A stretch of DNA of 64,000 nucleotides from positions 2,356,001-2,420,000 of the forward strand of contig OZ251229.1 of assembly GCA_965240325.2 (NCBI GenBank), in the 5' to 3' direction. The notes under the pieces are model-generated. The model ran no database searches. It had not been told where the DNA came from and was given only the letters and a program-made list of their open reading frames with translations. This DNA is from Rebecca billardiae RCC1528 (Eukaryota > Protista > Haptophyta). Each line of letters begins with the position of its first letter. Position 1 is the first letter of the stretch. Position numbers and translations under genes: made by a program. Positions 526 to 43,559 of the stretch are shown here, piece after piece.

Positions 526-590
526 GACGGAGGGTGCACCGCGGGCCCCTAACTGCGTTGGTTCTACGGAAGGACCGCGGAACGCGGTCA
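526..590 (+). mobile_element. 3' end of Helitron2/Helentron-like element (copy C)
   Basis: TGCACCGCGGGCC (535-547), then ~25 bp, then hairpin GACCGCG-GAA-CGCGGTC (573-589); same terminus as at 3117-3173 (+) and 29275-29338 (-). Confidence 0.6.
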
Positions 591-798
591 TATAATAATA
601 ATTTAATATGCCCCTCGCTCCACCCTAGGTGGGACAGGGGGTGCGGGGTGTGACGAGCCCAGGGGCCAGGTTCCCCAGCATCAAGCACTGCATCTGCAGC
701 AGCCCGCCGGCGGGCCGGGCTGCGACATCGACTACCACCTCATCTGCTTCATCGCCCAGAGCGCGCTAGGCGGCGCCCTCACTCTCCGAGCCCCTCTT

Positions 799-1190
799 CT
801 GCAGCTGCGCGCCGCTTGGCCGGCGCGCGGCGACGCGTACTACGACCTCATCCTCATCCAGCCTTTCCAGGCGCCCACGCGGGCGCACGGGGGCGACAGC
901 CGCGGCTGCCGCTTGCCGGAGCTGCTCGCCGCTAGGTCGGCGGGCGGCGACATCGACTACGACCTCACCCTCATCCAAGTGCTCCGGAAGGCGCTCGGCC
1001 GCGGCGGCATCTGCCGTCGCCGCCGCGTGCCCCAGGCCGAGGCGGTGCTCCACCCCGGCCCCGCTCCCGTAGGGGGGCAGGGCTGCGGGTGGCGCACTGT
1101 CTGACCTGGACGGAAGGCGCGGACGCATTTTATGTGTCTGTTGCACTCTGAGCCTGACGCTTGTCCGATGCTGCCACGTCGTTAAATATA
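799..1190 (+). repeat. dispersed ~390-bp SINE-like repeat (copy 1)
   Basis: Highly similar to 6166-6589; has an internal duplicated unit (GCGGCGACGCGTACTACGACCTCATCCTCATCCA / GCGGCGACATCGACTACGACCTCACCCTCATCCA); ends GCCACGTCGTTAAATAT followed by an AT-rich tail. Confidence 0.75.
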
Positions 1191-1386
1191 TTATTACTAG
1201 CGCCGCCTACTACTTGATTATTCAATATCGGTCGTATAAAGCGCTGCGTCAGCCCGAGGCCGGGCCGAGGCGGGCCGAGCCACCGAGCCGTGGCGCGTCC
1301 TGACGCGGTGCCCGGACGGCAGTCTGAACAGCCGCCGGTCCGAGGCCGAACACGGAACAGCTCAGATAGATAGATAGATCTAGTTA

Positions 1387-3175
1387 TGGCCCGCGGTGCA
1401 GGGCGGAACGCGCAGCGTGGAGCCCGCTCCGTGGGCCCTAACCACGTTTCAAAAAGATCTTTGATCAAGAAAAAAGGGACGGGGGACGATTTTCAAGGCT
1501 GGAAGAGACCGAGTTTCGAATTTTGAGACCGCAAAGAGACATCGATTAGCGAGAAATGGACGCGCCCACGACTTCAGATAAGCAAAGCGGGAGTGACGCC
1601 CGTCCATAAACTTCACGCCCTTTAGGATCCCTAACGTAACGAACCGTTACACGCGATTTTTTCCAGCCAATGAGATTGCCGCAAGGTCAAGGAGCGACGA
1701 CGACGTATCTAGATAGCCAAGCCGGCACAGCATTACTTGTGTGCTGGGCTGCCGCTTTGGGGGTTCTGATCAATCACCCAGGGCCCGGTCTGGTCATAAA
1801 TGAGCCCGCCGTTTATGACGACCCATTCATGTACATGTATGAACAATGGGTCATTAGACCGCGTCGTATCTTAAAAAACCGCTTCATCACGTTGGACCGC
1901 GTCGTATCAATGCTCGTAAATGAAATTCTATTCTACCGCTTCACGTAGTAACCCTGATGATGATCATAGATTATGGAAGATGCTCGCGTCGAGTCGTCGC
2001 GGCGCCCCCCGTCACACGCGCAAAACAACAGAGCAGTGGGCCCGATCGCACGTGGGGGGCGATGGCAAGCAGCACCTCGACCGGCGACGCCGACCAGGAC
2101 TACGTTCGCCGCGTATTGAACGCGCTGCTCGACTCGAGGACGGTGACGCGGGTGAACAACACCACGTTCCAGAGCACCGCTGCCGCCATCTCCGTCGCCA
2201 GGCACAAGCAGACCATCCCCGGCGCCGCGAGCGAGTACGGCGTGTCAACAAAAGCGATCAAGAAGCTCCTTGGCCAGGTCCGCGAGGTGCTGGCGGCGGA
2301 GGGCGCACTCGGCAGCGGTGGCGCTGCGCGGTTGATCACCGACTTCACCACGCGCCCCGCAGGCCAGCTCCCTCCCTCCTCCTCACCCGGCCCAAAAGCT
2401 GGCAGCCGCTTCGAGGCACTCGCCGCGCTCGACGGGGAAATGCCCGCTGCAGAGCAAGCACAACCACAGCGGGGGCGCCCGGCCGGCTCGCTCAGCCTGC
2501 TGGGCACGCTCAACCTAGGCGTCACGTGCTACCTCGGCTCGCTGCTGGCTGCGCTGCTCGCGTGCCCTTGCATCGTCTCGCTCGCCACATCTGCCGCGGC
2601 GGAGCAGTGCACCAACCCCATCGTGTCCAGCATGCGCTCGCTGGCGCTCGCGCATGTCAACTGCGAGTGGCCCAGCGAGGTGGGGCCGACGCGTAGCTTG
2701 CTCGAGCCGCTCCACGACGCGATCGCGGAGGTCTGTCGGTGGACAACGGCGTTTGGGCAGCAGCAGCAGGACGCGTGCGAGGTGCTGTACAAAATCATGG
2801 AGGCCCTCGGGCTGGCTGCGACGAGGCGTGCTCGTACCTTGGCTTGCTCGAGTGCCTCGGTCAGTTGGCGAGCGAGCAGCCCTCGCAGCAGCAGCGCGTG
2901 CCGACGCCGACAATCTCGCAGCAGCAGCGCGTGCCGACGATCTCAGTCGGCCATGACTTCGACTGTACACAATCGGCGCCGCGCCGGCGGCTGCGATGGG
3001 CCCGCCCGGCCGCGCGGCGGGCGGCGGCGCGCCGCTGGAGTCTACTCGCTGCCGGGCTCGTGGCCGGGCGGGCCCACTCTCAATCGCGACGGAGGGTGCG
3101 ACGGAGGGTGCACCGCCACCGCGGGCCCCGAACTACGTTCGTTCTACGGAAAAGGACCGCGGAACGCGGTCCTAT
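1387..3175 (+). mobile_element. non-autonomous Helitron2/Helentron-like element (copy A)
   Basis: 5' T-GGCCCGCGGTG (1388-1398); subterminal inverted copy CACCGCGGGCC (3117-3127); terminal hairpin AGGACCGCG-GAA-CGCGGTCCT (3153-3173). The first ~130 bp and the 3' end are shared with 29275-30363 (-). Confidence 0.65.
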
Positions 3176-3445: not shown

Positions 3446-5479
3446 TCACGACGCCGCGTCCATCCGGCGGCGTGCGACCTCTTCGGACGCCTCGTTGAAG
3501 TGCATGTCGAAGCGCGCCTTGTACGCCGCGCGGCCGGTCGCCGACGTGCCCCACGACTTGAACTTGTCCCACTGGCGCGCATCGTCGACCCAGTGCGAGC
3601 GCGGCCGCGCCTTCGCGCGTCGGCCGACACCGACGGGCGTGGGCGCGGGCGGCGCCCGGCTGCCCGCGTGCGAGATCCCGGCGCGCGCCGCCGAGTCGTT
3701 GACGTGCGTCGCAATGTCGGGCAGCTCGGGCATGGGCGGCGGGCGCCCCTGCCCCTTGCGCGGGCGCGAGCCGGGCGGCGGCGGCGCCGTGGCCGCCTTG
3801 CGCGCCGAGCGCACGGCCATGTCGAAGAGCGAGGCGCGCTCCACGGGGGTCGAGAAGCCGTCCTGGCAGATGTAGTAGTTGGCGCGCACGCGCGCGTTTG
3901 TCGCGCCCGGCGGCCGCACCTGCGGCACCGCGCGCGGCCGCTCGCCGATCGGCGGCGCGTTGGGCGGGCGGACGGCGTGCGCGTTCACCATCCGCTTCAC
4001 GAGCGCGCGCTTGTACCCGCGCCACTGCCGCCCGTCGATCAGGCTCGCGATGATCTCCGAGTCGGTCACGTACCTCGACGCGTTCGCGCGGAAGAGCGCC
4101 TCGATCTCGGCGTCGGCCGTGTTCCGAAAGTCGATGGTGTGGATCGAGAAGAGCTTCATGTCGGTGCACGAGACGATGGAGGCGAGCGAGCGGCCGCCGA
4201 CGTGCTCGGAGAGGATCGCGAGCTCGCCGAAGAAGTCGCGCGGGCCGAGGCGGCGCAGCTCGAGCGTGCGCCCCGGCACGGAGAGCGGGTCGGTGTCGGC
4301 GCGCGCCGCTTTCTCCAGGATCCGCTCGGCCGACTGGTCCGCCTGCGCGTCGTCGCCCGGCTCGATCACGCCCGCCGAGATGGCGATCATCCTGTCGTCG
4401 CCCTGCGCGCGCGTGAGCCGGATGGAGTGGTCCTCCGGCACGAGCACGCCCATGTGCGAGGTCGCCTCCGCGCGCATCTCCGCCTCGCGGAACGCGCTCT
4501 CCGGCACGTGCCGCAGCACGCGCGCCTCGCCCGACAGCACAAAGTAGAGCTTGGTGGGCAGCTCGCCCTGCTTGATGAGCACGCTGTCCTTGTGCACCTT
4601 CTCGAGCTGCAGCTTCTCGACGAACGGGCGGAGCGACTTGCGGTCCAGCCCGCGGAGGAGCGGGATCGAGGTGAGGAAGTCCACCTTCTGCCGGAACTGC
4701 TCGTCGAAGGACGAGGCCATCACCGCCGAGAAGGCCGTCTTGGTCACGACGATCACGCTCGCCGGCTCGAGCGCGCGCACCTAAGGCCGCGCGCGGCGCA
4801 AAGGGGGGGGCGGGGGCGGCGGCGCCGAGCGCGGTCAGGCGGGGTGCGCGGACGCCGCGGCCACGCGCGCCACCGCGCGTGCGGGCGGCCGCCTGCGCGC
4901 GCGCACCTCGAGCGGCTTGTGCGCGCGCTCGTCGCGGCGGCCGGCCGCGGCCGCAAAGCTCGCCCACGCCTGCCCCGGGTAGAGATGGCCTGCGACGCGC
5001 CGCCCGTACTGCAGCGCGAGCACGCCCTCGAGGACGATGTAGAAGTGCTCGTCCTCCTCCGGCTCCGTGTGCGTCGTCGGCAGGCGCGCCGACGCGCGCG
5101 CCGTGTACGACGCCGTCAGGCCCGTGTCTGGCAGCGCCTCGCGCGCGGCGGCGGCGATGATGATGAGCTCCGACTTGACAAATGACTCGCGCACGATGCA
5201 GCCGGCGATCGCGAAGCTCGAGATGTCGCTGAGCCGGCTGAACCACTCGAACGCGTTCAGTATGTGCAGCAGCTGGTACTGGTCCGACTCCTTGCGCGTC
5301 GTCGGGTCGGTCGACGTGAGCTTCTTGGCATCCGCGATCTCGGACGCTTGGCCCGGCCACTTGCTCACGGCGAATGTGCGCTCGGTGGCGACCGCGTCGC
5401 GCTCCACGGCGGGGAGCTCATTCACCACCGCGCGCTTGAGCTTGTGCCATTCGGACTCGGTCGTGTCGCCGATCACCAT
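3446..5479 (-). CDS. protein with two cyclic-nucleotide-binding domains (intron 4781-4906; start uncertain)
   Basis: HFYIVLEGVL..GHLYPGQAW..VRALEPASVIVV, and LIKQGELPTKLYFVLSGEARV..LGPRDFFGELAIL..RSLASIVS. A GT..AG intron joins the two ORFs in frame. Confidence 0.8.
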
Positions 5480-5729
5480 CGCACCTGCTTCGCGGGGCTC
5501 GACCCCCACCTAAGCAGCCACCATGGGATGGGCCTCGACTTGGATCGATCCAGACGTTACTTCGAGCGCGCCGCCGCCGGCGGCGGCGGCGGCGGCGTCC
5601 AGTGGTGGGCTGGTGGCCTGGATTCCTTTCAATGGGTGGGCCCTAGAAAGTTTTCAATAAAGTTTTCCCGCCTGATGAGCTTACGCGCGCCGGGCGGCAG
5701 CGGCGGCGAGTGCTCCGCCGGCGCGGCGC

Positions 5730-6145
5730 GCCGGCGCTGCGGGCGCGGATGTGCCCGCAGAGCCAGCGCGTGCGGACGGCCTGTTCCGGGAGAGCATCTG
5801 CCGCCCTCCTGCCCCGCGCACCTTGTGCGAAGCCTCTTTTCGCCGCGGCTCAGGGCAGTGCGCACCGGGCGCGCGCCGCCCTCGAGGCCAGCCCTGCCGC
5901 CGTGCGCAGCGTGGTTGGGAAGGAACGGGCGCTACGTGCCGGGCGAGATGGTGATGCCGTAGTCGCACGCCATGCCGCCCAGTGAACGCCTTGACGAGCG
6001 TGTCGTCGGCCCGTTTGCATGCCTCCTCCGACTTCTCACAAATGCCTTGTGCACCGAGCCTCGCGCGGAGTGACCCTTGTCCGTTGTCGGGACGACGAGA
6101 CGATCACCGAGACACAGAACAGTGCGGGCTACTCTTGCATGAATG
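5730..6145 (+). repeat. dispersed repeat homologous to an internal arm of the 58107-59624 element
   Basis: Aligns with the reverse complement of 58835-59265 and in part with 58400-58670. Confidence 0.75.
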
Positions 6146-6165
6146 TATATATATATATATATATT

Positions 6166-6589
6166 GCAGCTGCGCGCCGCTTGGCCGGCGCGCGGCGACG
6201 CGTAGTACGACCTCATCCTCATCCAGGCGCCCACGCGGGCGCCCCGGGGCGACAGCTGCGGCTGTCGCCTCCCGCAGCTGCTCGCCGCTAGGTCGGCGGG
6301 CGGCGACATCGACAACGACCTCACCCTCATCCAAGTGCTCCGGAAGGCGCTCGGCCGCGGCGGCATCTGCCGTCGCCGCCACGTGCCCAAGGCCGAGGCG
6401 GTGCTCCATCCCGGGCCCCGCTCCGCGCCATAGGTGATAGGGGGGTCCCAGGGCTGTGCCGTGTGCGGATGGCGGCACAGTGGCGCACTGCCTGACGGCT
6501 GACCTGGTCGCGGAAGTGGAAGGCGCGGACGCGTTCTATGTGTCTGCTGCTGCACTTAGCCTGACGCCTGCCCGTTGCATACCACGTCG
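6166..6589 (+). repeat. dispersed SINE-like repeat (copy 2)
   Basis: Similar to 799-1190; preceded by (TA)n and followed by (GA)n. Confidence 0.75.
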
Positions 6590-6599
6590 TGAGAGAGAG

Positions 6600-6636
<37 letters not shown>

Positions 6637-6717
6637 GAGAGAGAGAGAGAGAGCTAGACTGCCTAGAGACTCTTGAGTAGAGAGAGAGAGAGAGAGCTAC
6701 TAGAGAGAGAGAGATCT

Positions 6718-6809
<92 letters not shown>

Positions 6810-6820
6810 AGAGAGAGAGG
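6590..6820. repeat. (GA)n microsatellite
   Basis: Directly visible, interrupted. Confidence 0.95.
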
Positions 6821-7003
6821 TATGTATGTGTATGTATGTATATCCCTGTACAGTCGTGCAGAAGTAGTGGGGGCTGGCCAGGGTAGGGCTGGAGGCTTCG
6901 GCCGCCAGCCTGATCACCCGGAGCCCGTTATTTATCAATAAGGGGAATTTATTAGTGCGGAACGCCGGGAACGCGACGCTTCGTCCTCGCGCTAATCCGA
7001 TTA

Positions 7004-7511
7004 CAGGCAATCGCGGGCAATAAGAAGTCAGAGATCTCACGGCTAGCCTCGGTTTCTTAGCCGTTCGGTAGCCCGAGCGCCTACGGAGTCTCAGTTTCTT
7101 AGCTAGGTCCGCCCGCCGCGCAGGCGCGGGGGGCGCAGGGGGGCAGAGCCCCCCGCTGACTCTTTAGGCCCGGCCGGCGAGGCCGACGAAAATTTTGGGT
7201 CTTTTTGGAGCAAATCTGGCATGATGTTGCATGGATGCTGCGGTGCACTGGCCAGGAGTCAGTCATCAGGAGAAGTCAGGGACTTGGCCTGTACTCGTAG
7301 TCGGGCCGCGCGCCGCGTCCCCGACGGCCCGACTGCGCCTCGCCCCTCGGCGGACCACTCGTCAGCCGGGACGACGTAGTCCCGGTTTCTTAGTGTGACT
7401 ATGCGTATAGCGAACCAGCCAATCGCTAGCCTCAGTTTCTAGGCCAGATCCGCAGATAGCAAGCCCCAGTTTCTTAACGTGACAGCTCCTAGTATTGCCC
7501 GCGATTGCCTG
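7004..7511. mobile_element. MITE, Tc1/mariner-type (TA target-site duplication)
   Basis: 19-bp perfect TIRs CAGGCAATCGCGGGCAATA (7004-7022 / 7493-7511) flanked by TA on both sides; five internal C(A/G)GTTTCT(T)A motifs. Confidence 0.85.
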
Positions 7512-34812: not shown

Positions 34813-35333
34813 AAGTCACGCATATCTCGGTCCGCACGGCCACGCGCCCACCTGTTCGCCATCCTTCCGCCAGTCCGCCACCAGCCGGGGCGCCTGGCGG
34901 CGGAACAACACCCCGTGGAACGGGTGGCCGGTGAGAATCGATCATCAACGAGCATACTTGTAATAATGGCTTGTGGATAGGCATCAAGCTAACCACATAT
35001 CATCGGCCCATACAATTAGTACCTGATGTAGGCTCATCATCCCAAGGCGCTCGCCGTGAAAGTTGGGAAGTGCTTATTAGCGAGTAGTTGGTGACTTTTC
35101 AAGACTTGAATAGCAATTGACGAATGCGTCTTTGTGACGTTTCGTTGATTAGTGAACCCACTTCACGAATCTCTATCTGGGATTCCATCCCAGATGAGTG
35201 GTCATCAGCATCTCCTCAACCACAATTACAAATATCGAACCTACCAGAAGCTCTCCATCGGCGACGACCACCCAACACGGCCCCACCCGGCCGGGAGAAA
35301 GTGACGCCTCCCACGCCCCGGGCTATCCCCCCC

Positions 35334-37902
35334 ATGTCGTGGCACTCGATGCGATCTTGGCGCGACAGGCGTCGCACGGTGTCGCCGACGCCGGTGTCGT
35401 CACCGGTGCGCTCGACGATGGCCGCGACGCTTCGCGCAATGGAGGAGGGTGCGCGCGCCTCCGGCGACGGCGCGCGCGACGGCTCGAACGACGATGCTCC
35501 GCGCCCGACGGATGTGCCGATCATCCTCGAGCTGCCAGAGTGCGACCTGGCCGGGGACTGGAAGGACGCGGTGCTCGAGCGCGCGTATCAGGACGAGCAC
35601 ATGCTCCCCCTCCTGTACAAGCACCTCACGCGCGGCGGCATGGTCTTGCTCTGCGTCTCGTCGGTCTTCACCGTCGTGAGCTTCTTGTCGTTTGGCCTCA
35701 GCTTCGCGTTGACACTCGCGGCGAGCACATGGCTGCTGGCCTTGGTTTTGGTCTTGGTCGGCACGTTTGGCAGCCGAGCGGGGCTTCCACTCGCGGCGAC
35801 GGAGGCGGTCACGATGCTGCTCCTGGGTCTTCTGCTGGCGATCCCGCTCACGCCAACGCGTCTGTCGTCGCTGATGCAGAGCGTGCATGCTGGCGTGCGC
35901 GTGCGGCTGGACAACGAGGGCGACCTGCAGCTCGTGACGATCCGCTTCGCCGTCATCCTGCTGTACAGCGCCATCTTCGTGCAGCTGCGCCCACGGCGGT
36001 TCGCCGTCGTCCTCGTCTTCACCTGCATCTCCTCGGTTGCGCAGGAGCTCATCCTCGCGCCCGGGCTGCTGGCGACCAACGCGCGAGATTCAGTGGCCAT
36101 CATCGCGCTGCACTTGCTCGCCTACTTCGCGCGGAAGCACGTGTGGGCGATCGATCGCGCGCAGTGGCACTTCCACCGGCGCGTGGGCGACGCCGTGCGC
36201 GAGCAGTACGCCAAGGAGCGCGAGGACATCCACAACCGCCTCGAGCTCGCCAAGGTCACCGCGGGCAAGGAGGCGCGCTCGAAGCTGATCCGTGTCGCGA
36301 TGCACGACCTGCGCAGCCCGCTGCTCTCGGTGCACTCGCTCTCCAAGACGCTGGAGGCGCTGCCCGAGGACACGCCGCTGCACCACATCACGGGCTTTGT
36401 GCGCGCGCTCGGCGCGCTCTCGCAGCTGATGGAGGGGATCGTGAGCGACATGCTCGACTTTGAGCGCATCGACAGCGGGCGCATCACCCTCGTCAAGCGC
36501 CCGCTCTTCCTCGCGGATGTCCTCGGCGGTGTGCGCGCCACGTTCGAGACGGTCGCCGCCGGCAAGGGGATCGACTTCCGCATCGAGCCCCTGCCCGCCG
36601 TGCTCGCGGCGCCGCACGCGTACGAAGGCGACGCGGGGCGGCTGGCGCAGGTGCTGAACAACGGGTGCAGCAACGCGGTCAAGTTCACCGAGGCGGGCGG
36701 CTCGGTGAGAATCAGCGCGTGGCTCGCGCCCGAGCCGCCCGCGGGCAAGGGCAAGGGCTGGGACACGGTGCACGTGCGCGTTTCGGACACGGGCACCGGG
36801 CTGTCGGCGGCCGAGCTCAAGAAGCTGCAGGACGGCGACCTCTTTGTGCAGGTCGGCCGGGGCCAGCTGCAGGGCAACGGCGGCACGGGCCTCGGCCTCT
36901 CGATCGCGATGGAGCTGCTCAAGCTGCACGACGACTCGGAGCTGCGGCTGCGCTCGGCCGGCCCGGGCCAGGGCACAGACTTTGAGCTCGTGCTCAACCT
37001 CAAGCGCGCGCTGCCGCCTGCGGGCAGCGCGAGCGACCCCGCCTCCTTCGCTGGTGCTGGCGCGCTCTGCGCGCCGGCGGCGGACCGGCCCTTTGGCGCG
37101 CTCTGCGCGCCGGCGGCGGACCGGCCCTTGGCCTCGCGCTCGACGTCGCCCGCGCCCTTCCGCCACGCGGTGAGCGACATGGAGCAGATCACGGGCACTG
37201 CGACGACGATGCCGCCGCCAGGGAACGGCGGCACGCTGTCTGCGCCGTTGACCCCGGTGGCGCACTACCAGGTGGCGTCGCCGCCGCCGCCGATGCCGGC
37301 CACGGCGCCGTCGCAGCGCCGGCGGCTCAGCAGGCCGCCGCCGAGCGCGCCTGCGCCGAGCGTGCCGCCGGGCAAGCTCCGCTTCCCGCCGGGCTTCCGC
37401 TGCCTGCACGTCGAGGACGACAAGTTCGTGCAGATGACGCTGCCGCTCGCCACCTTCGAGCTCTTGGGCGCGGCGTACGACACGGCGAACGACGGCGAGC
37501 AGGCGCTGCGCATGGTCGAGGAGACGCAGTACGACTTCATCCTCATCGACAACCAGGTGAGTCCCCCGTGCCCACGCGCCGCACGCCACGCCGCGCTGCG
37601 CGCACGTCGCGCGCGCCGTCCACTCACGCCGCACCCTTCCGCGTCGCCTCCCTGTCTTCGTGCAGATGCCCAACCTCGGCGGCACGGAGACCACGCGCCT
37701 CCTACGCGAGCGCGGCTTTGTGAACACAATCATCGGGCTGACGGGCGATCCGGAGGGCTCGGACGACCGGGATGCTTTCGAGCGCGCGGGGCTGGACGCT
37801 TGCGTGGACAAGAACAGCAAGGGCACCGACTTCATTGTGAGCGAGCTGCGCAAGCTCGCCCATGGGGACAACCGGGTTTTCGAAATGCGCGCGCCAGCCT
37901 GA
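35334..37902 (+). CDS. membrane hybrid sensor histidine kinase/response regulator (intron 37557-37665)
   Basis: TM helices; H-box AMHDLRSPL; N-box QVLNNGCSNAVKFT; G1 DTGTG; G2 GTGLGL; receiver LHVEDD..DFILIDNQ|MP..GLTG..VDK. Confidence 0.92.
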
Positions 37903-38625
37903 GCGGCTGGTTGTAAGCGTCAACGACTGCGCGCCGCGATGCCTACGATGTATGACGATGCTGACTAGTCAGTCGCGCTACGCGCTAGTAACTCACTGAG
38001 GGAGTCACTAACAGCAGCAGTGCGTATTTATAATAAGATGACGCGACGACGCTCGATCTATGATGATATGCTGACGAATGGCGCGGACAGGCGGTGTCGA
38101 TCATCGTCATCAGTCGTACCGGGTGCCAAATCGGATTGACGCTGACGACGGAGTGATGACACGACTGCTTATTGACATCAGCCGAACTCAGTCAGTCGTG
38201 ACAGTCGTACTCGATCGGATATCATCGCAGGGTAGTAGTTCGTCGTATGATGATGATGATGATGATGATTCGTCGCGGACGCCGGACGGCCTCGTCACTC
38301 GTCGTCTCGAGTCCCGACTCCGACTCCGTCGATCGACCTGCAGTGAGTGCAGTGCTCGAGCCCTCGCCTCTCCGACGGAGCTGCTCGACCGCTTGATAGT
38401 TGATAGTCGTTGTTGTCGCTCGTCACTCCGGAGTCCGGACTCACTCGTCAGTCTTAAATTGCTAGTCGTCAACGCGGTCATCATCATCATCAATGACAGG
38501 CGGCATGTCGTCAGCAGTGTTGTCGACTGAGTAGTGACGAGTCTCAGACGACTGCGTCAATCACTGCGCTGACAGTGCTCACGCCTCGGCCTCGTGGCTC
38601 GTCGCGTGCCGCCGCCTCATCATCG

Positions 38626-40025
38626 TCACCGTTGCATCAATGGTCCCAGAGTCTCGCGCAGATCGCACGTGAGCTGCGCCTTGTCCCCGTAGTAGCACCG
38701 CGCCTGCTCGAGCACGTGTGCAAGCTGTTCGACGCCCTGGCGATCGGAGTGCCCCCACAGCCGGAGCCGCATGAGCGCGACCGCCCGGCGGATTTCGATT
38801 TGCTGCGCGGGGTCGTCGCTGCCGCTGGCAGCGCGGAGCATGCCGTCGAGCGCGTCTTGCCAGCGCACGAGGCGCGGCGCGCTGCTGGACGCCCACTCGG
38901 CGGCGCCCTCCTCTGCGTCCGCGGCAGGCGCCGTGCCCTTGCCCGCGTCGCGAGCGAGCTCGGCGGCGCTGAGCAGCGCGTGCTGGACCATCTCCTCGCA
39001 GAAGAGGTTGAGCCCAGCAGGGCCGACCGTCTCGCGCACGCGGCGGAGCACCTCGGCGCGGTCGGTCCAGCAGAACGCGGCCGCGTTCTCGATGTCGACG
39101 GCGCCGGCGATCCGCGCGATCTCGGCGCGCATCGTGCGCTCGTCGGCCGCGGCCTGCGCCTTGAGCGTCGCCGCTGCGCTCGGCGGCATCAGCGCGCGCA
39201 CGGGCCGGTTGAGCAGCAGCGCCGTGCGCAGCTCGTCGAGGCACCACACGCGGGAGAGCGGCGCGGGGTCGTCGTACCGCTCGAGGAAGAGCCACAGCTC
39301 GCGGCTCTCAAACACCGCCTGCCGCAGCGGGTCGAACTGGAATGCCATCAGCCCGCCCCCGCTCGCGTGCAGGTGCTGGTTCACGCAGAACACGTCCAGC
39401 CACACCATCGTACGCTCGCGCTCGGGCTCGGGCACGGCGCCCAGGATCGCCTGGACGAGGCCGCCGCGCCCGGTGCGCGCGATGGCGCTCTCGGGCACGT
39501 AGAACGTCTGCCGCCACGCGTGCGAGCAGAAGATCCGCGGCGCGCCCTTGTGCGCGTCCGCGACGAGCTCGATGAACGCGCGCCCGACCGGGTTGGGCTC
39601 GAGCAGCTTCTGCTCGCGCGTGGCCGGCAGGATGAGCCGCTGCACGACGGCGTCCGTCGAGAGCCACGCGATCTCGGACTCGTGCGCCGCGGCCCAGCGC
39701 TCGAGGAACGCCACGGAGACGCCCTCCCAGGAGACGGCCAGCGCCCCGGTGCGCGACACCTCGCTCTCCGCCGCGTGCGCCTCGCGCACGCGGCCCTGCC
39801 GCCGCAGCAGCCGGCCGAGCGCCGCGGCGCGAGGCGCTCGCGCCGCATCGTCGCGGTCGAGGGCGCGCAGGCCGGCGCGGAGGAGGCGCTCAGCGCGGCG
39901 CGAAGCGTGCTCGGCGCTGCCCAGCTCCCACAGCTCGGCCACGCGCAGGCAGAGCCTGTGCGCGAGCCGCGACCACTGCGCGGGCGCGGTCTGCTCGATG
40001 AGCTCGAGCGCCCAGTTGTCGCCGT

Positions 40026-40061
<36 letters not shown>

Positions 40062-40989
40062 CGGAAGCCTCGTCGAGGTGGGCGTGGCCGCGCAGCTCGG
40101 CGGCGAGCTCCGCCTCGGCAGCGCGTGCGTACGCCTGGCGCAGCACGTCGAGCAACCGCGGCCGTACCTCGTCCACACCGCCCAGCTCCTCGATCAGCGC
40201 CTGCACCCACGAGCGCAGCGCCTCCGCCTCCGAGTCCGCGGTCGCGGCCGCGGCGGGCTCGACCTCGAGCGCGGCGACGACGCGCAGGACGACGGAGGGG
40301 CCCGAGGCGGCGAGCGTCTCGGCGAGGCGGCGGCGCTCGTGCGGCGTCAGCGCGATCGTGAGCCGCGCCTCCGCGTGCAGCGCGCACGTCGACTCGACGA
40401 GCAGCCAGAGCCGGCGGAAGGGCGACGGGTCGTCCCACGCGTCCACCACCTGCACCATCTCGCCCGTCGAGGCGATCAGCGCCTGCTTGCGGCGCAGATC
40501 GGCGCGCACGTCGCCGCGCGGCGTGTGGATGTCGCGGCTGAGCACGGGCAGGAAGAAGCAGGCGCTCGCCCGCGCGCCGTGCGGAATCGAGCGGCTGATC
40601 GCCGTGACCGCGCTCGAGAATGGCATCGCAAACGGCACGGAGACGTAGTGCGTGACCGGGCCGGCGGCGGACGGGTCGGCGCGCGCGCGCCACTCAGCCC
40701 ACGCGCACGTGGGCTGAGGCACGGCCGCGAGGGACGCCTCGTCCTCCGGCGGCCACGAGATCGTCGCGCTCGCGCCGTCCGGCCGCGTGTACGTGCGGCC
40801 GCGGTCGCTCGAGCCAGAGTCAAAGGCGACGGTGTGGCCGTCGGGCAGCACGTCCTGCGCCCACAGGCGCTCCTTCAGCTCGTACCCGGTCAGTGCGGAC
40901 CCTCCGGCGAGGGAGCGCGCCGCCTGCTCCTGCAAGACCGCGAGCGACACGCCAAGGTCGCGCGGCGGCGCGGGGCCGTCGTCGGCCAT
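38626..40989 (-). CDS. tandem HET/TIR-like domain protein with TPR-like helices
   Basis: The C-terminal module has FCSHAW, VWLDVFCVNQH and SRVWCLDEL. The N-terminal module is a degenerate paralog. Each module is followed by helical TPR-like segments. Confidence 0.75.
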
Positions 40990-41062
40990 TTCCCCAGCCG
41001 ACCAGGCCGCCGGCCCGGGCGGTGAGAACCTCCTGCTCCGCGCGGCCGCGTGCAAGCTGTCC

Positions 41063-42427
41063 ATGCACGCGTGCGGCCACTGCGGCGGCACACTCTTCTC
41101 GGGTGACTTCGTGGGGCATGCGGCGGCGGACATGGACGCGGCTCTAGGGTTCCACTTGCGCCGCGCATGCGTCACGCGCCCCGAGGACGACCTGCGCGCC
41201 GTCATCGCGCGGGGCGGCCCGATCGACGTCGTGCTGCGCGACGCGCGGCCTGCGGCCAAGGGCGACGCGCCGCTTGCCTTCTGTGCCCGCCACTCGCTCG
41301 ACGAGCTTGCGATGACTCTGCTCGAGCGCGGCGTACCCGCGTCCGAGCTCGACGCCACAGACCGCTTCGGCTGCACCGCGCTGCACCACGCGGCTGCTCG
41401 GGGATGTGTGCGACTGGCGGAGGCGCTCGTGGCGCGGGGCGCACACGTGGACGCGCGAACGGCCGACTCTGTGCACGCGCACGTGGGTGACCGCACGCCG
41501 CTGCATCTCGTGGCGCTCACCGTGTCACCGCACGCGCTCGATCTCGCCGCCGTCCTGCTGCGTGCGCGCGCGGACCCACGCGCGCGCGATGCGGACGGCC
41601 TGACGCCGCTGCAGCTGGCGCGCCCCTGCGGCGCGGCGCCGGCGTCGGCTCTGGCGCTGCAGCTCTCGGAAGCGGCGTCTGCAGTGGCAGGGAACGCGGA
41701 TGCGTCGGCGGACGAGCGCGCGGGCCCACACGGTAGCGACGGGAGCGACAGCTCCGACGACGAGTCCGCCATGCCCCACACGAGCGCCGCCGTGCGCTCG
41801 GCGCTCTCGGCTCTCGGCCAGCGCGAGCGGCGCCGGCTGCGGCTGGACGTGACGGATCGGCCGCTGCTGCGCGGCGTGCACGTGCTGCGCGGCGTGTGGG
41901 AGCGCGGCGTGTGCGAGCACGTGCTCGGGCACGTGCTCCGCGTCGCGCGCACCCGCGGCTGGCAGAGCGCCCGGCACGCGCACCACCCGACCGTCGACAT
42001 GCCCGTGTGGCGCGTGCCCGCCGTGCACGCGCTCGTGCTGAGCACGCTCGAGCGCCGCGTGCTGCCGGGAATGGAGCGGCTGTTCGAGCTGGCGCCGGGC
42101 GCGCTGCGGGTGAAGGAGGCGTTCTTCATCAAGTACGAGGCCGCGCCCGAGGGCTCGGAGCGCGGTCGGTGCCAGCCGGGCCTCGAGCTGCATCGGGACG
42201 GCACGCTCTTCAGCTGCAACGTGCACCTGAACGGCGGCGCAGCGGCGGACGGGAGCTTCGCGGGCGGCGGCACCTTCTTCGCGCACACGGGTGAGACGGT
42301 GTGCGAGCCCGCGGGAGACTTTGTGGTGCACTGCGGCCAGATGCTGCACGGCGCGGTCTGCGTCACGGCGGGCGTGCGCTACGTGCTTGTCGCATTCGTC
42401 GACGAGAAGCGGCGCCCAGATGAGTGA
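41063..42427 (+). CDS. ankyrin-repeat plus 2OG-Fe(II) dioxygenase (PLOD-like C-terminus)
   Basis: GCTALHHAA, DRTPLHLVA, GLTPLQLA; FFIKYE..LELHRDGTLFSCNVHLN..GGGTFF..LHGAVCVTAGVRYVLVAF. Confidence 0.85.
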   Translation: MHACGHCGGTLFSGDFVGHAAADMDAALGFHLRRACVTRPEDDLRAVIARGGPIDVVLRDARPAAKGDAPLAFCARHSLDELAMTLLERGVPASELDATDRFGCTALHHAAARGCVRLAEALVARGAHVDARTADSVHAHVGDRTPLHLVALTVSPHALDLAAVLLRARADPRARDADGLTPLQLARPCGAAPASALALQLSEAASAVAGNADASADERAGPHGSDGSDSSDDESAMPHTSAAVRSALSALGQRERRRLRLDVTDRPLLRGVHVLRGVWERGVCEHVLGHVLRVARTRGWQSARHAHHPTVDMPVWRVPAVHALVLSTLERRVLPGMERLFELAPGALRVKEAFFIKYEAAPEGSERGRCQPGLELHRDGTLFSCNVHLNGGAAADGSFAGGGTFFAHTGETVCEPAGDFVVHCGQMLHGAVCVTAGVRYVLVAFVDEKRRPDE

Positions 42428-42793: not shown

Positions 42794-43559
42794 ATGGCGC
42801 CGGCTGAGGCCGACCACCACCGCCTGCTCGGCGTGTCGCCCGATGCGACAGAGAAGGAGATCAAGCTCGCCTATCGCAGACTAGCAAAGAAGCACCACCC
42901 AGACATGAATCCCGGCTGCAAGGTCCGGCTGAGCGGCCAACGCGCGCCCCAACTGCGCCGTGCTGAGCGCCGACTCCCGCACCTGAATGCTGCGCAGCAC
43001 GCGGAGGACTCCTTCAAGCAGATCACGATCGCGTACAACAAGGCCATCGGCGAGGTAAAACTGCGCGCAGTCCGTCCGTCCGGGGCCACCGGCCGCACTG
43101 CATCGGCACCGCGCTATCGCAGGTGCGAACTCCGCGGCGCATTGCACCAGCATGGGTCTGGACGGAGCATGCGCCATGGCAGACGGCTGACCGCGCGCCT
43201 TGCGTGACGCACGCCGACATTGCAGGAGGACAAACGCCGGCTCGTCTTCCGAGCACGTGAACTTCGATGAATGGAACCGCGCGCACTACGGCTCGGACGA
43301 CCGGTACGACTACTCGGGCACCCGCAGGTGGAACGTTGGGCCAAGCGAGCGCTCCTGGCAGGAGGCAGCGGCCAGGCGAGCCCGCCATGGCAGCGCGCAG
43401 GCGGCGTCACAAGGCATGGGCTCAGGTAGCCGAGCGCAGTGGCGCGCCCCGCCGAGAACAGCGACGCGCAAGCCGTCCGCGCTCATCATCATCGCGGCAC
43501 AGCTGGCGGCGGGGGTTGGCATCTGGACTTGGGTTGCGAGCACGTTGGTGGCCAAGTAG
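42794..43559 (+). CDS. DnaJ (J-domain) protein with C-terminal TM segment (introns 42923-42997, 43123-43225)
   Basis: [35 protein letters not shown]; GT..AG introns keep the frame; hydrophobic C-terminus. Confidence 0.85.

Follow-up and report, generated by a model that had tools for sequence, protein, structure and literature searches.

In bacteria, plants, and animals alike, enzymes of the TIR type connect the sensing of pathogens with cell death and with signals derived from NAD+. Domains of the HET type are recognized by three consecutive blocks, aromatic-Ser-aromatic-x-W-G, then W-I-D-x-x-C-I-x-Q, and then R-G-W-x-x-Q-E. HET is a remote relative of TIR, and its homologues were reported in haptophytes, stramenopiles, and green algae (PMC4986451). 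In TIR enzymes, the catalytic Glu lies in helix alphaC, a neighbouring Cys matters for the synthesis of 2',3'-cNMP, and a second TIR domain is needed to form the active site, via a BB-loop contact or BE interface (PMC9153377). The activity of SARM1 requires residues Y568, D594, W638, and E642 (PMC8266388), and the TIR3 signature of the plant TNL proteins reads YAxSxWCLDEL (PMC4851768). For microalgae, a part of TIRs in resisting giant viruses has been suggested only recently, on the basis of expression data (PMC12489294). Here we describe a gene of the haptophyte Rebecca billardiae RCC1528, located in a stretch of 64,000 nucleotides (the window; contig OZ251229.1, positions 2,356,001 to 2,420,000), whose product carries two unlike copies of an alpha/beta module. 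We place this module in the TIR/HET superfamily, as a branch that is new and has no annotation so far, and outside Pfam HET and Pfam TIR.

The gene is a single intronless and uninterrupted open reading frame (ORF) on the minus strand of the window (38626..40989), running for 787 codons from an ATG at 40989 to a stop codon at 38626-38628; the protein begins MADDGP. Homologues align with it colinearly from about residue 13 to about residue 780, without introns, and the coding sequence is complete with no intron needed. The initial annotation, made from the DNA alone, described the protein as an internal duplication on the basis of five pairs of motifs, all of which are found in the translated product: GVSLAVL (residues 13-19) and GVSVAFL (423-429), THYVSVPFAMPF (113-124) and IFCSHAWRQTF (486-496), FFLPVLSRDIH (145-155) and VWLDVFCVNQH (529-539), WDDPSPFRRLWLLVES (185-200) and YDDPAPLSRVWCLDEL (572-587), and, finally, LEVEPAAA and VDIENAAA. 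The duplication was borne out, well beyond chance, by BLASTP comparison of the two halves (E 3e-5, 27% identity across 139 residues) and by profile-profile comparison with hhalign, where the N- and C-module profiles, built from 23 orthologues, align over 164 columns with a probability of 99.0% and E 3.1e-18. With whole halves, the hhalign alignment extends to 194 columns, from about 92-290 in the N half and from about 467-675 in the C half. The GVS pair of head motifs is not significant by itself (hhalign probability 7.7%, 12 columns), and the helical tails that follow the modules show no sequence alignment to each other (hhalign probability 0.2%). The two units are products of an ancient internal duplication, older than the spread of the orthologous family among marine protists. 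The protein is probably cytosolic and would consist of two repeats of a head helix, a module of the TIR/HET superfamily, and a short TPR-like helical arm.

A search with residues 415-665 retrieved 27 homologues with 38-55% identity, none of which has a Pfam domain on the module. Their sources include the chlorophyte Cymbomonas tetramitiformis and the COSAG entries of EukProt, which we take to be co-assembled single-cell genomes of uncultured marine eukaryotes. Alignment at full length to at least 22 homologues gave 30-37% identity with E down to 1e-125, and nearly all of those retrieved span the whole protein. The tandem layout is retained in 31 homologues, and in a tree of 233 modules the N modules and the C modules of the orthologues fall into two separate clades of 31 rows, with support of 100 and 99, respectively. 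In the R. billardiae genome the gene is present in a single copy. Its two halves differ in divergence: the C half is 39-47% identical to the orthologues and the N half 25-33%, and the terminal branch of this protein in the tree is 0.47 for the C-module and 1.21 for the N-module.

The N-module (residues 97-271; 40177..40701, minus strand) is a diverged copy of the TIR/HET-like module. It keeps S117, H155, W185, P188, R193, W195, and E199, and these residues are retained in 22, 20, 23, 22, 21, 22, and 23 of the 23 orthologues, respectively. Its segment WLLVES (residues 195-200; 40390..40407, minus strand), with the invariant E199, is the counterpart of WCLDEL in the C-module. The counterparts of H490, R493, N537, Q538, and C583 are lost family-wide. 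The first module had been thought to lack both SHxW and WxD, which is true of this species, where F120, F146, and P148 occupy positions that are W, W, and D in most orthologues. However, the loss is partly lineage-specific, as Trp at position 120 and the WxD aspartate at position 148 are each kept in 19 of the 23 orthologues; Pro at position 148 occurs in this species only, and the species also has Phe at the two Trp positions. Since the tandem layout is kept in 31 homologues with separate N and C clades, the N-module is not a recent degenerate copy; it has diverged and is not simply a decayed module.

The C-module (residues 470-661; 39007..39582, minus strand) is the intact copy and the predicted catalytic unit. 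Its elements are FCSHAWR in betaA, VWLDVFCVNQH in betaB and the BB-loop, LWLFLERYDDP in betaC, and RVWCLDEL in alphaC, and 22 of its residues are invariant in the orthologue alignment. AlphaFold models of the two halves, folded separately, are confident, with a predicted local distance difference test (pLDDT) of 88.4 and 90.0 and values mostly above 90 in the C-module. Both modules follow the order betaA-alphaA-betaB-loop-alphaB-betaC-alphaC-betaD-alphaD, and their conserved residues lie where betaA, betaB, and betaC have their C-terminal ends and where alphaC begins. A Foldseek search of the C half against PDB placed the TIR domain of SARM1 on top (probability 0.98, E 0.057, template modelling (TM) score 0.45), with further matches to the TIR domains of RPP1, SNC1, RUN1, MAL (filaments), and ThsB, the rest being mostly TPR and other helical-repeat proteins. 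As model-based scores these are consistent with a TIR fold but weak; the N half gave only helical noise in the same search.

At the sequence level, the closest agreement is in alphaC. Residues 582-587 of the C-module, WCLDEL (39229..39246, minus strand), are identical to the hexapeptide that closes the plant TIR3 signature (PMC4851768). The predicted catalytic Glu586 stands there beside Cys583 and Trp582, within the predicted helix 581-592, so that the conserved alphaC Glu of TIR domains (W-x-x-x-E) is present, and this Glu is invariant in both modules of the 23 orthologues. By position, Y568, D594, W638, and E642 of SARM1 would correspond to the SHAWR loop, D532, W582, and E586. With the TIR NAD+ hydrolases and cyclases (SARM1, the plant TNL proteins RPP1, RUN1, and SNC1, and bacterial ThsB), which are the best structural matches for both modules, the family shares the predicted flavodoxin-like beta-alpha order, the W-C-x-x-E of alphaC, an Asp ending betaB, an aromatic/basic betaA loop, and fusion to repeat arrays. 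In contrast to these enzymes, the domain described here is longer (about 190 residues), includes a conserved head segment as well as additional helical structure downstream of betaD, carries the family-specific invariant motifs SHAWRQTF and FCVNQH, and cannot be aligned to the TIR_2 domains of its own genome. It is also found in two unlike copies per chain, with no NB-ARC or SAM oligomerisation domain.

Could the likeness to TIR reflect nothing but a common fold? The module would then be a flavodoxin-like enzyme unrelated to TIR and HET, whose conserved His, Asp, Cys, and Glu perform some other chemistry, such as that of a hydrolase or transferase. Such an explanation agrees with the sub-threshold outcome of every sequence-level TIR or HET test and with the weak structural scores (E 0.057, TM below 0.5). 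We nevertheless hold it to be very improbable: TIR is the only alpha/beta family that recurs among the C-half matches listed from 350,542 PDB chains, though other flavodoxin-like domains are far more numerous; the order and spacing of the motifs match the three TIR/HET blocks, including the identical WCLDEL; and the signals of the HET hidden Markov model (HMM) in the genome coincide with paralogues of the module.

The fungal HET domain (PF06985), a cell-death effector of heterokaryon incompatibility, has the same order of three blocks, with SYxWG where SHAW is found here, followed by WxDxxCxxQ and RxWxxxE, and it is also fused to TPR or WD repeats, as the module is repeat-fused here. In the C-module, the blocks are FCSHAW, VWLDVFCVNQ, and RVWCLDE, of which the HET HMM aligned block 2 only and never blocks 1 and 3. 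Profile positions 29-70 align, below threshold, to the WxD..C block of the C-module in one orthologue (P0015) and of the N-module in another (P0006). The genome-wide search gave nothing above the cut-off; its only two HET signals in 72 Mb, of 18.2 and 14.9 bits, are both sub-threshold and both fall in paralogues that are recognized by the module profile at E 1e-12 and 1.5e-6. Unlike HET, the family scores 13-18 bits against the gathering score of 22.5 bits, has a different spacing between blocks 2 and 3 and no NACHT, and consists of conserved orthologues, in contrast to the hypervariable HET genes of fungi. Thus the earlier HET/TIR-like assignment stands as a matter of resemblance, judging from Foldseek, the sub-threshold HET matches, and WCLDEL, but no Pfam HET or TIR model reaches threshold. 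Because of these sub-threshold scores and of a non-significant comparison with TIR_2 profiles, membership in either family is unproven.

The two paralogues with a HET signal carry HET-like variants of the module. The forms are WIDRACIDQ and WLDRLCIDQ, and the loci are C18:1865500-1868500 (L019, ORF 535-2154, minus strand) and C8:1153500-1156500 (L018, ORF 1385-2116, plus strand). In one of the two, the module is joined to a C-type lectin domain (PF00059, E 2.6e-6).

We favour, with moderate confidence, a reading in which the C-module is a TIR-type nucleotide-cleaving enzyme and the N-module its built-in and largely non-catalytic partner. Glu586 in the W-C-x-x-E of alphaC would cleave NAD(P)+ or a related nucleotide and yield a signalling product. 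The predicted pocket comprises His490, Trp492, and Arg493 from the betaA loop, Asp532 with Asn537, Gln538, and His539 from the BB-loop, and Trp582 with Cys583. The N-module seems to keep the fold and the R-W-E triad, having lost the His, Arg, Asn-Gln, and Cys throughout the family and Asp148 and two Trp in this species. Because these pocket residues are lost and a TIR active site needs a second TIR through the BB-loop contact, the N-module would most likely act as a non-catalytic partner of the C-module. The helical arms may hold the two modules in a set geometry or serve as a binding site for a regulator. Taken further, the protein could be a single-chain asymmetric TIR pseudo-dimer, in which the N-module is a permanent source of the partner surface for which free TIR enzymes depend on oligomerisation. 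With assembly thus constitutive, the C-module would make an NAD+-derived second messenger under the control of a ligand, and the superfamily, with at least 8000 clusters, would be a major signalling or effector output domain of marine protists; we regard this extension as doubtful.

A number of results weigh against an enzymatic TIR-type module. The window protein has no match to Pfam HET even at E<=10, and the HET matches of the orthologues are sub-threshold, with a best listed score of 16.1 bits (P0015, E 0.015) and a best E of 0.0076 among 23. Neither Pfam TIR nor TIR_2 matches the window protein, the 23 orthologues, or 91 distant relatives; no match was obtained with PADLOC, including its TIR models, or in a sequence search of PDB; and hhalign gave no significant alignment to a small profile made from nine of the genome's own TIR_2 domains (probability 0.3%). 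The Foldseek E-values are all above 0.001, with target-normalised TM scores of 0.36-0.46 and a root-mean-square deviation of about 6 A, and the VIA-align lists for the C half are filled by helical-repeat matches, leaving the alpha/beta module barely probed. The N-module retains in most orthologues enough pocket residues to be itself possibly active, and pseudo-dimer packing can only be inferred, because the AlphaFold2 halves were folded separately. Moreover, many TIR domains are pure adaptors. Finally, HET domains are not known to have any enzymatic activity (PMC10197012).

Another possibility is that both modules are non-enzymatic TIR/HET-like assembly domains, comparable to the adaptors MyD88 and MAL, and that the protein is a scaffold, which nucleates or caps homotypic oligomers of single-module TPR paralogues and whose two modules offer two interfaces. 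TIR adaptors associate via the BB-loop without catalysis (PMC9153377), and recruitment of further HET proteins has been put forward as the mode of action of HET (PMC4986451). In addition, MAL TIR filaments are among the Foldseek matches, and the dozens of single-module paralogues in the genome are possible partners. On the other hand, the residue that is invariant throughout the superfamily is the catalytic Glu of TIR enzymes, and five polar residues at the ends of strands (H490, D532, N537, Q538, and H539) do not vary either, as is usual in a pocket but not in an interface. A pure scaffold therefore seems unlikely to us, and an enzymatic C-module with an N-module partner remains the preferred reading.

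The initial annotation saw in the gene a candidate immune or cell-death receptor, in which the first module may be a decoy for the second or its autoinhibitor. Under such a model the N-module would be dead and the C-module toxic, its release following the detection of a pathogen. The TIR/HET-like domain, the extra pocket residues lost from the N-module in this species, and the common fusion of the superfamily to TPR arrays, as in NLR-like sensors, are in line with this proposal, and infection of the haptophyte G. huxleyi by a virus raises the expression of TIR-domain genes (PMC12489294). However, the gene is single copy, 31 homologues spread over several protist groups share its tandem layout, the C half is 39-47% identical to the orthologues, and the N-module is under purifying selection, with E199 and W185 invariant. 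The NACHT or NB-ARC NTPase of the NLR/STAND proteins was absent from Pfam scans of the window protein, its orthologues, and its paralogues, and the arms are short and degenerate, with no Pfam TPR match in the window protein. No relatives were found on viral contigs in a scan with a single peptide pattern. The receptor and decoy model is thus weakened by the lack of a NOD domain, the single copy, and the conservation among protist groups; for the tandem gene it is unsupported, and we consider it improbable. For this gene, conserved and single copy, a signalling enzyme is a likelier product than a pathogen sensor that diversifies. For the superfamily as a whole, a link to defence seems plausible, because TIR genes respond to a virus in a haptophyte (PMC12489294).

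The module extends far beyond the tandem proteins. A module-only profile (A4), built from both window modules and eight paralogues and searched against 1.84 billion sequences, recovered 8054 cluster representatives at E<=1e-3 and 4468 at E<=1e-10. Among the 91 top-scoring relatives scanned, none has a Pfam model on the module and 53 carry TPR_12 or TPR_10 arrays; proteins with two modules are common in the family (52 of 185). The equivalent of Glu586 is the single invariant column among the 91 distant relatives, and conservation among them is 90% or higher for F-x-S-H-A, W-x-D, P-W-x-x-P, and R-x-W-C. The module belongs to a very large domain family without a Pfam model, usually fused to TPR_10 or TPR_12. 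In the ESM Atlas, only unnamed clusters were obtained, from Chlorophyta, Haptophyta, and Bacillariophyta.

A survey of paralogues, a step already envisaged in the initial annotation, gave at least 150 exon-level matches to the module profile in the genome, from dozens of genes (for example, C21:332426-332935, C13:19529-20038, C1:2553023-2553532, C22:932987-933493, and C22:960192-960617). Single-module relatives are matched by the profile at E 1e-8 to 1e-72, with R, W, and E invariant; a distant one is KAG8460825.1 of Diacronema lutheri. The paralogues with TPR_10 or TPR_12, such as those at C22:932987 and C22:960192, have the same module as the tandem protein but only one of it, followed in some by 11-22 canonical TPR_10 repeats and in others by unknown regions, and their expansion is strong, some being recent duplicates that share 75-83% identity across about 1050 aa; the tandem gene, in contrast, has two modules, short degenerate helical arms, and a single copy. 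The expanded single-module proteins are thus better candidates for an immune-receptor role than the tandem gene, their expansion looking more like a diversifying repertoire of receptors or effectors.

A large TIR/HET-like family is hereby defined, with 8054 representatives and dozens of genes in this genome, and, as it has no Pfam model, surveys of algal immunity that rely on Pfam would miss it. Its conserved two-module member offers clear targets for point mutation, E586, E199, and D532, and hence makes it testable whether HET/TIR-like domains of protists consume NAD+ and whether a degenerate TIR copy can replace oligomerisation.

The N-terminal head (residues 12-105; 40675..40956, minus strand) combines the GVSLAVL helix with a three-stranded sheet (strands at residues 53-56, 64-68, and 74-78) in the AlphaFold2 model of the N half, at pLDDT 85-96. 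The sheet (residues 53-78; 40756-40833, minus strand) has the family pattern P.GWT.E...Y...TGE...P, which recalls a degenerate WW domain, and on the model it may be described as WW-like; two orthologues, P0021 and P0027, have an additional genuine WW domain (PF00397) farther upstream. The first TPR-like helical arm (residues 272-400; 39790..40176, minus strand) contains a low-complexity Ala/Gly linker near residues 305-320. The C head (residues 401-469; 39583..39789, minus strand) consists, in the AlphaFold2 model, of the GVSVAFL helix and an invariant STDA..R segment ahead of the C-module; G423, S444, T445, D446, A447, and R451 are invariant across the family alignment, and single-module relatives share with this head the pre-module pattern GV...F...TT..V...KP.T. 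The second TPR-like arm (residues 662-787; 38629..39006, minus strand) has a disordered loop at residues 683-701.

The reading frame of the gene stays open upstream, to 1246 aa in all, which is unremarkable because the GC content is about 70%. An antisense ORF of 816 aa at 38575-41025 on the plus strand was rejected as a by-product of the same composition, the homologues matching the minus-strand frame only. A histidine kinase gene (HisKA and HATPase_c; 35124-37916, plus strand) lies convergent with the tandem-module gene, and an ankyrin-repeat gene (41063-42427, plus strand) is divergent from it, with about 70 bp between the two first ATG codons; a fragment of a DnaJ-domain gene is found at 42794-43207 (plus strand). 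Nothing suggests a functional link of the tandem-module gene to the histidine kinase, ankyrin, or DnaJ neighbours.

Two other candidate relationships were set aside. A caspase-like role of the invariant C583 and H490 found no caspase-fold matches, and the Cys lies inside helix alphaC. H-NOX, the nearest named cluster of the ESM Atlas, scored 0.77, below the level of a lead. The genome has thirteen H-NOX domains (PF07700; for example, C14:1154811-1155308, C24:210120-210605, and C3:2180662-2181183, all on the minus strand), and no module of the tandem family was found within 3 kb of H-NOX at the three of these 13 loci that were checked.

Apart from the module, the genome encodes canonical TIR_2 domains of Pfam, with 10 matches over the cut-off. 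Two genes have two TIR_2 in one open frame (C5:1949398-1950210, minus strand, and C13:1545244-1546164, plus strand), a separate case of tandem TIR domains. Finally, the products of three paralogues, L027 (C3:2428000-2437999; ORF 4798-7182, minus strand), L017 (ORF 4873-6192, minus strand), and L016 (ORF 4111-5133, plus strand), are 99.7-100% identical to the database proteins P0048, P0169, and P0030, in a collection from which the tandem protein itself is absent. P0169 and P0030 come from Logan read assemblies, and these near-identical proteins indicate that public sequencing data of this or a near-identical organism exist.

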